Virus record (IMG/VR): IMGVR_UViG_3300042923_000569 | Span: 1 to 64,000 of that record | Direction: 5' to 3' (one strand) | DNA length: 64,000 nucleotides | Part shown: positions 2,758 through 6,697 of the stretch, one piece after another | How positions within the stretch are numbered: position 1 is the first letter of the stretch | Layout of the letters: each line of letters starts with the position of its first letter | The notes under the pieces: generated by a model | Databases searched by the model: none | What the model was told of the DNA's origin: nothing | What the model saw: the letters and a program-made list of their open reading frames with translations, nothing else | Program-made: the position numbers and the translations under genes

Positions 2758-5109
2758 TTATTTTACTAGTAGGAATTGAAGGTCGGCTGAAGGTGAATCT
2801 TCATCGCCCCAATATTTGTGAAATTTCTCTGGTGTTGCTCTTTGAATAATTTCGCCATCAGAAACTACATATACTTCATGATTGGAAATTAACTTCTGCC
2901 AAAAACGAATAGCATCTTCTGAATGCAACGTATCACTCAAAATCTGTAGACCGCTTTTAATCATATCCATATACATCTGATAGACTATTCCTTTACGTCC
3001 ACGCTTTGCTGCAATAGCTTCAATGTGAAATACCTTACCAATTAACTGACCACTAACTACTGCAATCTCATTACCTGAATCGTCATACGCCATATATCCA
3101 GAACCATTTTTTGATTTAGCCACGGAAAATCCATCATGTTCAGCAACAGGGATCATTTTATCTCTTGAATTCAACTTTGCAGTTTTATCAACAAATTCAA
3201 CAGGGTCTGTATCAGCAAATGCATCAAATCGTTGTGGCATTTCTTGTAATTGATCCTTATTAATTAATTCCTGTTCATCAGCATCATCAATATCGTGCTC
3301 TAACTCTGCATTCTGAACAATATCAGCTAACCCACGCATAGAAGATTCAGCCATTGCAGACATACGTTCTTTACGGGATGCAGTACGTTCTACGTAATAA
3401 TCTAGACGCTCATCAAAATCAGCAATATCACTTGCACTTAGGAGTGCTTTAGAAATATGTCTAGGTTCAACTTCCGGTTTGTAATAACTTTCAAATAACT
3501 TGTTGGCAAAAGATTCAAAATCTTGTTCCTTCAAATTATTGAACATGTTTTCACCACCATTCATGTCGAGTGAATATTTTTTACCAGAAGATTGAACTGT
3601 CATCTTGAATTTTACACCAGCCATCTCAATTTCAAAATAACCTTCATCTTCAATATAATCATTAAATGTGATGTTCTTAGTACTATCTTGATTTAAGAAC
3701 TCTGCACTTTCAGCAAGGTTTTCAACTGCAAATAATAACCCATTTAAATTTGCATCAGGAGTTGATTCATCTTCTAACTTGTCTTTTAGCTTTAGAATAT
3801 TTCTCATATTTCCAAGATATTCAATTGGTAATGATGCCATTTGTTCTTTAGTTAGATCAATGCGAAGCTTTTTCTCATCACCTTCTTTAACTAGTAGGAA
3901 ATATTCGTCTTCGTATCTTTTTCTAAAAACTACTGAATATGATGGTTGATACCCACCATCAACAAATAATGTAAACTGTTCTGGATCTTCCATATTCACA
4001 TCATTATTGGTGGTTGGTTGCTGATCATATTCTCTCCATACTCGAAGATATAAATCCCCCATTAGGCTTTGTCCAGCTTCAGGGTAATCTAAACTCTTTT
4101 GTGAGTGGTGCCCGTCGGAAATATCCTTCTCTGATGAATCAAATTCATGATCTTCATCTTGATTTAAATCATTATCATAAAAGTTATTTACGAACTTATA
4201 AATCAATTTCATTGCCTTATTTGCACGAGCATCCTCTTTGTACTTTCTAAGTACTGAAATGATTTTGGATTGACCAAGAGTTTTCATAGCATATTGTATG
4301 GAATTGGAAATATCTTTATTTTTATTTCCAGTAAGTTCATCTTTATTATTTTCAAGCCATTGAGTTGCACGCAACGCCAAATCTTGAACTTGTGGTCCAA
4401 ATTCAACCCCACCAGCATAATATCTGTCATCACCTGTATGGGAGCCACTATAGCCTTTAGCACGCATAGTTTGCTGATCATTTGGATTCAAATTTTTTAA
4501 AACTACTGATTGAATAGTGTGTTGTAACTCATGCTGTACAGTATCCATAAAGTAATTTAGATGATCCACTATTGCATTAATATCATTACTGTTTTTTATT
4601 TCAGCATTATAATTAGGAACACCAAGATCTAACTCATTATAAGTTTCATCAGTACCACTACTACCAGCTTTATCAATGAATTGATTACTGATTTTCATAG
4701 TAATACGCATTTTATCAATAAGTTCTTTGGTCTTTGGATTTTTCTTTAAATTATCAGGTAATTGATTAAAGATCTCATCTGCATCCAATTTAAGATTAGT
4801 ACTACTGTTAACATACTTTTTCAAGTCATTTGGTGAAAGTACCGAAGCATTATATTTTCGCTGGAACCTTTTGCACCAATTCAATAGTGCAGTGGCTTTT
4901 TCAGATTGGCCTTTATTTTGTAAATCATGCTGTTTCATTACAGCCATTGTTAAGAGTACTGAACCAATAAATTTCTGTACTCTCTGTAATAATGCTGGTG
5001 GTACATTTAAAACACCAACACCTCTAGCTTCATCCAGTACCTGTTCTTCTTCAGCCGGAGGCTGGATTGCAGCATTTAAATGCTCATGAGCCTTACTTAT
5101 ATTTGGCAT
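2758..5109 (-). CDS. Multidomain protein: N-terminal HExxH zincin-like domain, C-terminal GNAT-like domain; probable internal head protein
   Basis: QHELQH plus YY..G.EF.PQ; C-terminal FHIEAIAAKRGRKGIVYQMY...SD...AIRFWQKL; LDEA and LQEM putative protease sites. Confidence 0.6.
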   Translation of the reverse strand: MPNISKAHEHLNAAIQPPAEEEQVLDEARGVGVLNVPPALLQRVQKFIGSVLLTMAVMKQHDLQNKGQSEKATALLNWCKRFQRKYNASVLSPNDLKKYVNSSTNLKLDADEIFNQLPDNLKKNPKTKELIDKMRITMKISNQFIDKAGSSGTDETYNELDLGVPNYNAEIKNSNDINAIVDHLNYFMDTVQHELQHTIQSVVLKNLNPNDQQTMRAKGYSGSHTGDDRYYAGGVEFGPQVQDLALRATQWLENNKDELTGNKNKDISNSIQYAMKTLGQSKIISVLRKYKEDARANKAMKLIYKFVNNFYDNDLNQDEDHEFDSSEKDISDGHHSQKSLDYPEAGQSLMGDLYLRVWREYDQQPTTNNDVNMEDPEQFTLFVDGGYQPSYSVVFRKRYEDEYFLLVKEGDEKKLRIDLTKEQMASLPIEYLGNMRNILKLKDKLEDESTPDANLNGLLFAVENLAESAEFLNQDSTKNITFNDYIEDEGYFEIEMAGVKFKMTVQSSGKKYSLDMNGGENMFNNLKEQDFESFANKLFESYYKPEVEPRHISKALLSASDIADFDERLDYYVERTASRKERMSAMAESSMRGLADIVQNAELEHDIDDADEQELINKDQLQEMPQRFDAFADTDPVEFVDKTAKLNSRDKMIPVAEHDGFSVAKSKNGSGYMAYDDSGNEIAVVSGQLIGKVFHIEAIAAKRGRKGIVYQMYMDMIKSGLQILSDTLHSEDAIRFWQKLISNHEVYVVSDGEIIQRATPEKFHKYWGDEDSPSADLQFLLVK

Positions 5110-5110
5110 A

Positions 5111-6697
5111 TTATAATTTCCTTAAACTTGCCATAAACTCGACGTACATAGTATCCTTGTCAAGTATTTGGTTTACTTCATCAGGGTAAGATACAGAATA
5201 TCGTATCAACATCTGAAAAGTTATTAACAATTGTTTTAATGTCCATACATATAAAGTTTTATCTGCATATGAAATGTCTATCTTGTCAGCACTATCTTCA
5301 ACTTCAACAACACTGAACTCTCGACCAAAAACTGTGAACTCAGTTGGACTTGATTGTTGAAAATCAACTCCCATATGTTCAGCATCTTCTTTCAATGACA
5401 GAATAACATCATTAATTGATTCTTTATTTACAGAACGTCTTTCACCTGTGATAAATTCAAGATCATCAATAATATCAGTACTGTCATACCATGTAACTGA
5501 AGATAAGGTTCCAAACAAACTTAGTACTTGTTTGCTGTTAAGTTTTTCTTGTTCTTCAAATTCAGGATCGGTAGAAATGATATTTACATAGTAACTTCCA
5601 TCTTTTGACATTTTATTTTTTGCAAGTACTAATGTCCATGAATCTTTTTTAACTTCAATCTGAACTAGAGTGTCCATTGTTTTACCGAAAGCCTGTACTT
5701 TATATTCGTCTTTCTTGTACATCATTTTGTACACGGTAAGCATTACATCAACGTTCGCTTCTAACTCTTCAGCAGGAAGATCGGTATTTGAATAATCAAT
5801 ACCAGATTCTTTGATATTATCATAGATGGGAGAAATATTTTTATACAATGCACTCATAGCCTTTTTATATCGTTCTGGTTGTTTACGATATAAATGGATC
5901 AAGAATGTTCTCGATTCTCTATTATTTTGTGCCACATATTCAATTGCTTTTTTTATTGCTTCATTTTTATTAGGATTAAGTTCATCCTTCAAAGCACTCT
6001 TTTCAAGTTCTACAGTTATGTTATCGATTACGTTTCCTAATTGTGGAGTAAATTCAATACCACTGGTATAGTAATCTTCACCATCAGAAAATTCTTTACT
6101 GTATCCCGGTTTCCTTTCCAATTGATTATCATTTTTGTTGATATTCTTAATTGCAAATGCCTGTACTACGTGTTGTAGTTCATGATACGTATTACTCATG
6201 ATTTCACTGGCAGTTTCAAGAAATGATGGATTATGATTTAATCTTCCGACAACAACTGTAACTAATGCTGAATAGTTACCAATTGATTCTTTTGAACCAC
6301 CTAAATTGTTATCTTGACTCTTAATCAACAAAGATAACTTCATGCGGTCTTTCATAAGACTGACCAATCCTGGAGTTACACCTTTGAAGTTTAGTTCTTG
6401 GAAAAACCTTTCTACGTCAATAGGGATATCGATAGAATGGTTAACAATGCTATTTGCCGTTTCAGCGGAAATATTTTTAGCTCCGTACTTAGACTGCAAT
6501 TTACCCATTGTTGTTTGTGCATCTTTGATGATCCGATTCTTTTCTTCATCACTTGTTCCGGTAGGAAGCATGAGCTGAATCTTATCAACATATTGTTTTA
6601 TTTTAAAGTACAGGTACGATGCCACATACATGTTTACTTTAGTTAATACTTCTTGCGGTACTTTAATGATCGCTTCTTGTAACTGATTATACTTCAT
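5111..6697 (-). CDS. HExxH zincin-like protein, paralog of 2758..5109
   Basis: [24 protein letters not shown]; N-terminal LQEA. Confidence 0.6.

Follow-up and report, generated by a model that had tools for sequence, protein, structure and literature searches.

Adjacent HExxH-domain paralogs of a Rak2-like jumbo phage as candidate head-packaged, protease-processed metallopeptidases

Two adjacent HExxH-domain genes

The subject of this report is a pair of adjacent, paralogous genes, each encoding a large protein with an HExxH domain, in IMG/VR virus record IMGVR_UViG_3300042923_000569. We analyzed the first 64 kb of this 357,873-bp record, which carries direct terminal repeats; this stretch of 64,000 nucleotides (nt), with a G+C content of ~35%, is referred to below as the window. 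The phage and its kin belong to the "Rak2-like" jumbo myoviruses, whose core genes are of the T4 type. Nucleotide identity of the window is ~75% to Serratia phage BF and the Erwinia pEa_SNUABM phages, and more remote kin are CBB, GAP32, Yersinia phage fHe-Yen9-04, PBECO4/121Q, and RaK2. Both genes lie on the minus strand, as do all other features of the window for which coordinates are given below. The first encodes a 528-aa protein (P0002; 5111 to 6697) that matches PHROG 18596, "virion structural protein," with an E value of 4e-232. The second, which starts 1 nt past the stop codon of the first, encodes a 783-aa protein (P0001; 2758 to 5109) that matches PHROG 22033 (E value, 2e-212), while its residues 585 to 783 match PHROG 25121 (E value, 6e-69), both again labeled "virion structural protein."

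A first-pass annotation, made from the sequence alone, had described the two proteins as sharing about 300 aa. The two open reading frames (ORFs) lie where that annotation put them, and BLASTP aligned their products over ~297 aa with 28% identity (E value, 4e-27). Searching the genome with a family profile (hmmsearch) revealed no third copy of the HExxH family.

AlphaFold models built on the family alignments (predicted local distance difference test [pLDDT] score of 89.8 and predicted template modeling score of 0.84 for P0002; pLDDT score of 82.1 for P0001) share one plan, in which a disordered leader is followed by an N-terminal domain made of helices, three strands, a long HExxH helix, and a helix led by a Glu residue, and then by two alpha/beta modules. 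In P0002, the leader comprises residues 1 to 8 (6674 to 6697), ends in L-Q-E|A, and has pLDDT scores of <50 at residues 1 to 7; the HExxH domain comprises residues 9 to 300 (5798 to 6673), with HELQH at 6170 to 6184 and a candidate third metal ligand, E215, at 6053 to 6055; and the C-terminal half, residues 305 to 528 (5114 to 5785), holds the two alpha/beta modules. In P0001, the leader comprises residues 1 to 27 (5029 to 5109) and ends in L-D-E|A, with pLDDT scores of <50 at residues 1 to 29. It is followed by the HExxH domain (residues 28 to 320, 4150 to 5028; HELQH at 4519 to 4533, E236 at 4402 to 4404), which the family profile found with an E value of 6e-43, and by a middle alpha/beta module (residues ~325 to 588, 3346 to 4137) that is the counterpart of the C-terminal half of P0002. 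An acidic, disordered linker (residues 589 to 623, 3241 to 3345; pLDDT scores of <50 at residues 588 to 632) then runs from A-M-A-E588|S to L-Q-E623|M and leads to a C-terminal fragment (residues 624 to 783, 2761 to 3240), in which the model has a GNAT-fold domain at residues ~650 to 783.

The first-pass annotation had called the two C termini unrelated, and this holds at the level of BLAST only. The predicted order of strands and helices is common to P0001 residues ~330 to 585 and P0002 residues ~305 to 528, and hhalign aligned the two parts colinearly (P = 5.4e-4 over 157 columns), whereas a control comparison with the GNAT part gave a P value of 0.61. We therefore regard these parts as diverged counterparts. 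All that P0001 adds to the plan of P0002 is the linker and the GNAT-fold end (residues 589 to 783); the GNAT-fold domain and the two cleavage motifs that bound the linker had been overlooked.

Leaders, the prohead protease, and virion fragments

Both proteins had been said to begin with cleavage sites of the type recognized by the T4 gp21 prohead protease, and both do start with the L-x-E|A motif, with L6-Q-E8|A in P0002 and L25-D-E27|A in P0001. E8 is kept in 42/42 orthologs of P0002; in P0001 orthologs, E27 is kept in 15/15, E588 in 14/15, and E623 in 15/15. These four are the only ortholog-conserved examples among all [LIVMF]-x-E sites in the two proteins, and the latter two lie in the disordered linker. 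A gene for a T4 gp21-type prohead (head maturation) protease is present in the same window (56847 to 57479), where Pfam Peptidase_S77 matches at 56967 to 57404 with 74.5 bits, above the cutoff, and PHROG 207, "head maturation protease," matches with an E value of 1e-58. Around it lie the portal gene and genes for a 274-aa virion protein, a scaffold-like protein, and the major head protein. The head genes that adjoin it likewise begin with L-x-E|[AS]. Between the protease and major head protein genes, the 373-aa product of 55657 to 56778 starts with M-S-K-L-D-Q-F-L-K-E|S and has no functional PHROG label; its position suggests that it is probably a scaffold or prohead core protein.

The N termini of T4 IPII and IPIII constitute the T4 capsid-targeting sequence. 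They read M-K-T-Y-Q-E-F-I-A-E|A in the T4 record, compared with M-K-Y-N-Q-L-Q-E|A in P0002. The majority of distant relatives of the HExxH family start in a similar way, M(K/R)...L-x-E|G-(L/I)-I-K-V-P, and relatives in which the HExxH domain is C terminal have similar leaders at their own N termini. Across the genome, [LIVMF]-x-E-[AGS] was found at the N termini of 23 proteins, with ~16 expected; this enrichment is modest, and the motif alone is weak evidence. The P0001 leader is a shortened version of a ~60-aa leader, starting with MPSKSK, that is found in relatives; a Pfam scan of the long form gave no match, and no other protein of the genome carries a leader of this type. The distance between the two cleavage motifs of the linker varies among relatives, and CBB_322, P0050, and P0057 carry an acidic, Pro-rich insert of ~35 aa there. 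The linker of RaK2 ORF156 (L010:2602-3519) contains an insert rich in Cys and His, C-x-C-x-x-C ... C-x-C-x-x-C, which might bind metal.

A virion location, as the first-pass annotation had supposed, is borne out by mass spectrometry of related phages. For CBB, we used the published paper and the peptide report deposited with it, the product of a fully tryptic search on 13 gel slices of whole virions. The P0001 ortholog, CBB_322, was represented by 30 unique peptides, the top count among CBB virion proteins. Its counterparts in GAP32 and RaK2 are listed as structural, and so is the GAP32 counterpart of CBB_321, the P0002 ortholog. CBB_322 peptides were confined to residues 71 to 577 and 769 to 847, and none of the 13 slices yielded a peptide from the leader (which has two good tryptic ones), from the linker, or across any of the three predicted sites. 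The main CBB_322 slice (25 peptides, 87 spectra) comigrated with a 68.9-kDa protein and contained no C-terminal peptide; the predicted fragments are a body of 63.7 kDa and a C-terminal piece of 18.5 kDa. Peptides of the C-terminal piece first appeared in slice 05, one slice held only three C-terminal peptides of CBB_322, and all five occurred together in the slice of the KTSC-domain protein of the same locus (21.4 kDa in the database entry, 20.6 kDa as annotated). In CBB virions, then, CBB_322 occurs without its leader and linker, and its C-terminal domain runs apart from the body, as fragments of ~64 and ~20 kDa.

These data bear on whether the proteins might instead be tail, baseplate, or surface-fiber components in which the N-terminal L-x-E is an element of the fold rather than a protease site. 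The spectra came from whole virions and so assign nothing to the head, these phages have many unassigned fiber proteins, and in the model E8 and the I-K-V-P that follows it adjoin well-ordered residues. Such a location would nevertheless leave the missing leader and linker peptides and the separate C-terminal domain of CBB_322 unaccounted for, as well as the resemblance of the leaders to those of the protease-adjacent head genes and of T4 IPII and IPIII, and no fiber-like or baseplate-like domain was found in the two proteins. We consider it most unlikely.

The HExxH domain and the zincin question

Our ortholog alignment comprised 57 sequences of both paralog types (42 of the P0002 type and 15 of the P0001 type). 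The motifs that the first-pass annotation had listed are all present, and their key residues are invariant in the 57 orthologs, far above chance; the 17 invariant columns include E8, V13, P14, H172, E173, Q175, H176, Q179, Y209, G213, E215, and Q219 (P0002 numbering). A profile search of 1.84 billion representative sequences gave 141 relatives at 50% clustering, ~100 of them solo proteins of 270 to 310 aa. Across 81 distant relatives with a mean column identity of 17%, H172, E173, H176, Y209, and E215 are invariant and E8, P14, Q179, and P218 are nearly so. The invariant Glu (E215) lies 39 residues downstream of HExxH in the paralogs and in the 81 relatives alike. The family has the signature L-x-E-(G/A)-x-I-K-V-P ... 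H-E-L-x-H-x-x-Q ... D-x-Y-Y-x-S-x-x-E-F-x-P-Q.

The HELQH motif is predicted to lie within a helix in both proteins, at residues 172 to 176 of helix 159 to 186 in P0002 and at residues 193 to 197 of helix 177 to 207 in P0001. In P0002, the HExxH helix is preceded by strands 120 to 126, 134 to 140, and 143 to 149 and followed by helix 213 to 236, which E215 opens. The zincin-like core has been described as a three-stranded sheet, an HExxH helix, and a Glu residue on the next helix (PMC5512222), and the predicted sheet-helix-helix order of the N-terminal domain fits it. Family members gave repeated subthreshold matches to mutually unrelated HExxH peptidase families (eCIS_core/DUF4157 five times, DUF6782 twice, DUF3920, SprT-like, and flagellinolysin four times), and the language-model neighbors of both paralogs were LPD23, DUF3920, and SprT-like proteins.

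SprT-type enzymes have a His residue as the third metal ligand. Unlike them, the HExxH family has no conserved downstream His, only the invariant Glu and Tyr, and its scores against the Pfam SprT-like model (PF10263) were below threshold: the window proteins gave no match, and one relative, P0083, scored 16.4 bits against a cutoff of 25.6. A "SprT-like metallopeptidase, 1-3 copies," has been listed for group 2.2 jumbo phages by Iyer et al. (2021; PMC7824862). That listing concerns the same phage group, a variable copy number, and a zincin-like HExxH protein, and two members of our family have weak SprT-like matches; the listed protein might belong to the present family.

Several searches told against a zincin. 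No significant zincin match was obtained in Pfam or NCBIfam, where all matches were below threshold, and a PDB search with the 81-member profile gave no match at an E value of ≤10. With the whole-protein models, Foldseek against the PDB returned only collagenase, M60, and NTNH entries at E values of 0.08 to 0.2, and VIA-align, in a wide search and a second look, found no zincin match for the N-terminal domain. In addition, a phmmer search of both proteins against the PDB gave nothing usable, and the BFVD fold search with the whole-protein models returned only the HExxH family itself. The negative fold searches are weak evidence, because they were made with whole-protein models rather than with the N-terminal domain folded alone. 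The putative metal site (H172, H176, and E215) is likewise read from conservation and helix order, not from geometry. The description of the domain as zincin-like in the first-pass annotation thus stands as to the invariant HExxH, Glu, and Tyr residues and the predicted sheet-helix-helix order and finds no significant counterpart among Pfam, NCBIfam, PDB-sequence, or fold matches.

On this evidence, the HExxH domain can be placed in no named family; it is absent from Pfam and NCBIfam. It might not be a peptidase at all but another metal enzyme, such as an HExxH oxygenase dependent on Fe and alpha-ketoglutarate, or a noncatalytic hub for the loading or holding of cargo domains. We consider this quite unlikely. 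Invariance of H, E, H, Y, and E at a mean identity of 17% is the pattern expected for a gluzincin active site under selection. That the N-terminal domain is a zincin appears likely, though not established.

Transcription, evolution, and possible role of the locus

The two genes had also been placed under a late promoter, and the sequence bears this out in a modified form. ATAAATA occurs 55 times in the genome, and 34 of these copies lie on the coding strand within 60 nt upstream of an ORF, where ~2 would be expected. They are located 20 to 56 nt before the ORF starts, mostly those of head, tail, and very large structural genes; the genes that they precede include those of the major head protein, the scaffold-like protein, and another head protein, and copies in the window lie upstream of, e.g., 54405 to 55580, 55657 to 56778, 57502 to 58326, and 8683 to 9216. 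ATAAATA behaves as a genome-wide late-promoter motif, in keeping with the proposal made by the authors of the phage CBB paper. The copy at issue (7250 to 7256) is not the full T4 late promoter TATAAATA, and it lies not directly before the paralogs but 36 nt upstream of the gene that precedes them. The full TATAAATA was considered and set aside, since the window shows no enrichment for it (5 copies, with 8.5 expected); the shorter ATAAATA is the relevant motif. A copy of TATAAATA at 2382 to 2389 overlaps the stop codon of the DUF3307 gene described below, just before the terminator.

The preceding gene (6687 to 7220) encodes a 177-aa KTSC-domain protein (Pfam KTSC; E value, 1.7e-12) whose N terminus contains I-L-E|A and whose ortholog, CBB_320, was detected in CBB virions by mass spectrometry. 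Because ATAAATA stands before this gene and the 3' end of the gene overlaps the start of the 528-aa gene, we regard the 528- and 783-aa genes as the second and third genes of one operon. The ORF for a 121-aa DUF3307 membrane protein (2385 to 2750; Pfam DUF3307 E value, 4e-10; orthologs annotated as membrane proteins) follows the P0001 stop codon after a gap of 7 nt and probably closes the transcription unit, whose end is marked by an intrinsic terminator-like hairpin and T-run (2358 to 2380) with a 9-bp stem containing 5 G-C pairs. The topoisomerase II genes lie beyond the hairpin, and a near-consensus sigma-70-like promoter (TTGAAA, 18 nt, TATAAT, extended TG) is found at 2323 to 2352, ahead of the gene for the large subunit.

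At the other end, ATAAATA lies in the apical part of a hairpin that is followed by a U-run (7228 to 7276) and serves as the terminator of the upstream ClpS-like gene. The folding energy of this hairpin is −21.1 kcal/mol (z = −5.75), and none of 200 shuffled sequences was equally stable. Late transcripts would begin within the hairpin and hence could not form it, and the layout may insulate transcription of the early and middle classes from that of the late class. Genes for a ClpS-like adaptor (7289 to 7819; Pfam ClpS E value, 2e-8) and a complete IF3 homolog (7887 to 8396; IF3_N and IF3_C) lie immediately upstream of the operon, and their synteny with the operon is kept in CBB, BF, PBECO4, and RaK2.

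Although the C-terminal domain of P0001 has a GNAT fold in the model, a Pfam scan of residues 634 to 783 gave no match at an E value of ≤0.1, hence no Pfam GNAT. Read by eye in the family alignment, the acetyl-CoA motif of the GNAT superfamily, Q/R-x-x-G-x-G/A, is not recognizable, and a single Gly, in K-G-[IV]-V-Y-Q, is conserved; the top matches include CoA-binding regulatory domains (the ICL2 C-terminal domain and YhhK). Transferase activity is therefore uncertain. By tblastn, full-length genes of the P0001 type occur only in the BF, CBB, GAP32, Yen9-04, Kaldavass, and Munch lineages, and in phages of the PBECO4/121Q and RaK2 types only P0001 residues 588 to 783 or 620 to 783 find a match, as a separate "virion structural protein." The order of the PBECO4 locus is IF3, ClpS, KTSC, HExxH (523 aa), GNAT-like (263 aa), and topoisomerase II, and that of the RaK2 locus is IF3, ClpS, KTSC-like, GNAT-like (305 aa), and topoisomerase II. 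The KTSC gene thus stands beside the GNAT-like module in all three variants of the locus, including that of RaK2, which lacks HExxH genes.

The stand-alone GNAT-like proteins (PBECO4 gp454 and RaK2 ORF156) have a ~55-aa leader in common with the P0001 family, and this leader ends in ...V-K-E|A-S-M-R, which is the motif found after E588 in P0001. P0001 can therefore be read as an older GNAT-like virion protein that received an HExxH and alpha/beta body after its leader and before its cleavage site. In a tree of the N-terminal domain, rooted at the midpoint and subject to long-branch warnings, the long type forms one clade (support by the SH-like approximate likelihood ratio test [SH-aLRT], 100) beside the short type rather than within it, and its sister is a solo form of 660 aa that has a leader. 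This placement points to an old duplication of the paralogs.

Some relatives fuse the HExxH domain to other enzymes. The metagenomic examples (L004:8001-9746 [P0087], L005:8001-9794 [P0142], P0091, P0092, P0174, and P0093) carry Acb1 (anti-CBASS), ART-PolyVal with GNAT, a 2H/LigT phosphoesterase, ART-PolyVal alone, a Pfam-recognized GNAT, or a second HExxH domain. The contigs resemble those of large T4-like phages. N termini similar to M-K...L-x-E occur in several of these proteins, which suggests that they may be head-packaged counterdefense enzymes; fusion partners with counterdefense or host-modifying functions would fit an action on host or defense proteins. The polyvalent proteins of phages and conjugative elements, for which entry into the host along with the DNA has been proposed and in which a zincin-like MPTase is the hub (Iyer et al., 2017; PMC5512222), offer a parallel, in that the HExxH domain is joined within the family to GNAT, ART-PolyVal, 2H, and Acb1 and would be delivered with the DNA; P0001 itself unites three parts in one polypeptide, namely, the HExxH domain, an alpha/beta module, and a GNAT-fold domain. 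The present family differs from them in having only 2 or 3 domains, in matching neither the Pfam MPTase-PolyVal model nor the LPD models in the scans run, in the apparent use of a T4-type leader and a prohead protease rather than MuF- or portal-linked modules, and in that its domains would be separated by the head protease and, as far as seen, not by the MPTase itself.

The closer parallel is with T4 IPI to IPIII and Alt. As in T4, the genes are late, lie outside the main head cluster, encode leaders with (L/I)-x-E before a small residue, and are accompanied by a gp21-type protease; as with the T4 proteins, orthologs are found in virions, leaderless in the case of CBB_322, and the domains are enzyme-like, as in Alt. 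The two groups have no sequence homology, HExxH and GNAT-fold domains stand in place of an ADP-ribosyltransferase, P0001 has internal cuts that would separate its domains, and ejection, which is known for T4, is a prediction for the present proteins.

The reading that we favor, with moderate confidence, is that both genes encode late-expressed virion proteins of this internal protein/Alt type, which are targeted by their leaders, trimmed by the protease, and likely ejected. The KTSC, 528-aa, 783-aa, and membrane-protein genes would be transcribed as an operon from the ATAAATA late promoter, and the N-terminal leaders would bring both HExxH proteins into the prohead, where the gp21-type protease would cut in trans after the conserved [LIVMF]-x-E sites. 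The 528-aa protein would lose 8 residues. The 783-aa protein would lose its 27-aa leader and then be cut twice in the disordered acidic linker, giving a body of ~64 kDa (the HExxH domain and alpha/beta module) and a GNAT-fold fragment of ~18 kDa. The N-terminal domain, of a phage-specific HExxH family, would most likely act as a zincin-type, gluzincin-like metallopeptidase that binds zinc. As infection begins, the mature proteins would most likely exit the head along with the DNA and act on host or defense proteins, as the first-pass annotation had proposed, or release or activate their partner domains.

Besides the negative searches for a zincin, several points weigh against this reading. We infer a head rather than a tail location, ejection, and catalysis. 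No CBB_321 was detected in the CBB virions, so that the P0002 type counts as structural through GAP32 only. The CBB report contains no directly observed neo-N terminus, which is explained by the fully tryptic search. Two good peptides of the CBB_322 C-terminal fragment (residues 691 to 705 and 720 to 728) are also missing, so the second cut may lie elsewhere, and peptides of the body smear into low-mass slices. Finally, the window proteins are acidic (isoelectric point of ~5), unlike the basic internal proteins of T4.

The proteins could also stay in the capsid, as components of an inner body such as that of 121Q/phAPEC6-type heads or as an accessory maturation peptidase for other head proteins, rather than being injected as effectors. 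Inner-body proteins of phiKZ are paralogous and protease processed, which is a point for such a role. An inner body of undefined composition is present in the 121Q/phAPEC6-type heads of related phages (PMC7247149), CBB_322 ranks with the most peptide-rich virion proteins, and for other jumbo phages a role in maturation has been proposed for a conserved zincin-like peptidase (PMC7824862). Among phages with the same type of virion, however, the locus has 0 (RaK2), 1 (PBECO4), or 2 copies, which would be unusual for a structural core component; the domain is fused to host-modifying or counterdefense enzymes; and acidic proteins are not obvious DNA organizers. We judge residence in the capsid to be unlikely and retain the view that the proteins are probably ejected.

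In the RaK2/GAP32/121Q-type jumbo phages, dozens of virion proteins have no assigned role, and for two that are among the richest in peptides the analysis maps the domains, predicts cleavage sites, and proposes a role that can be tested. The locus also illustrates how an effector may be assembled, here by insertion of a whole HExxH body into an older GNAT-like virion protein, past the leader and ahead of the cleavage site. If the relatives are injected, the T4 Alt paradigm would come to include peptidases, proteins resembling acyltransferases, and perhaps anti-CBASS enzymes that are packaged. A broader idea, which we offer tentatively and regard as rather doubtful, is that the HExxH domain marks a widespread, unnamed class of "preloaded" effectors in T4-like and jumbo phages, namely, a metallopeptidase that is carried in the head behind a T4-type leader and injected. 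If this were true, the domain would cleave host immune or housekeeping proteins, or free or activate its GNAT, ART, Acb1, and 2H partners, and counterdefense would start before phage gene expression.

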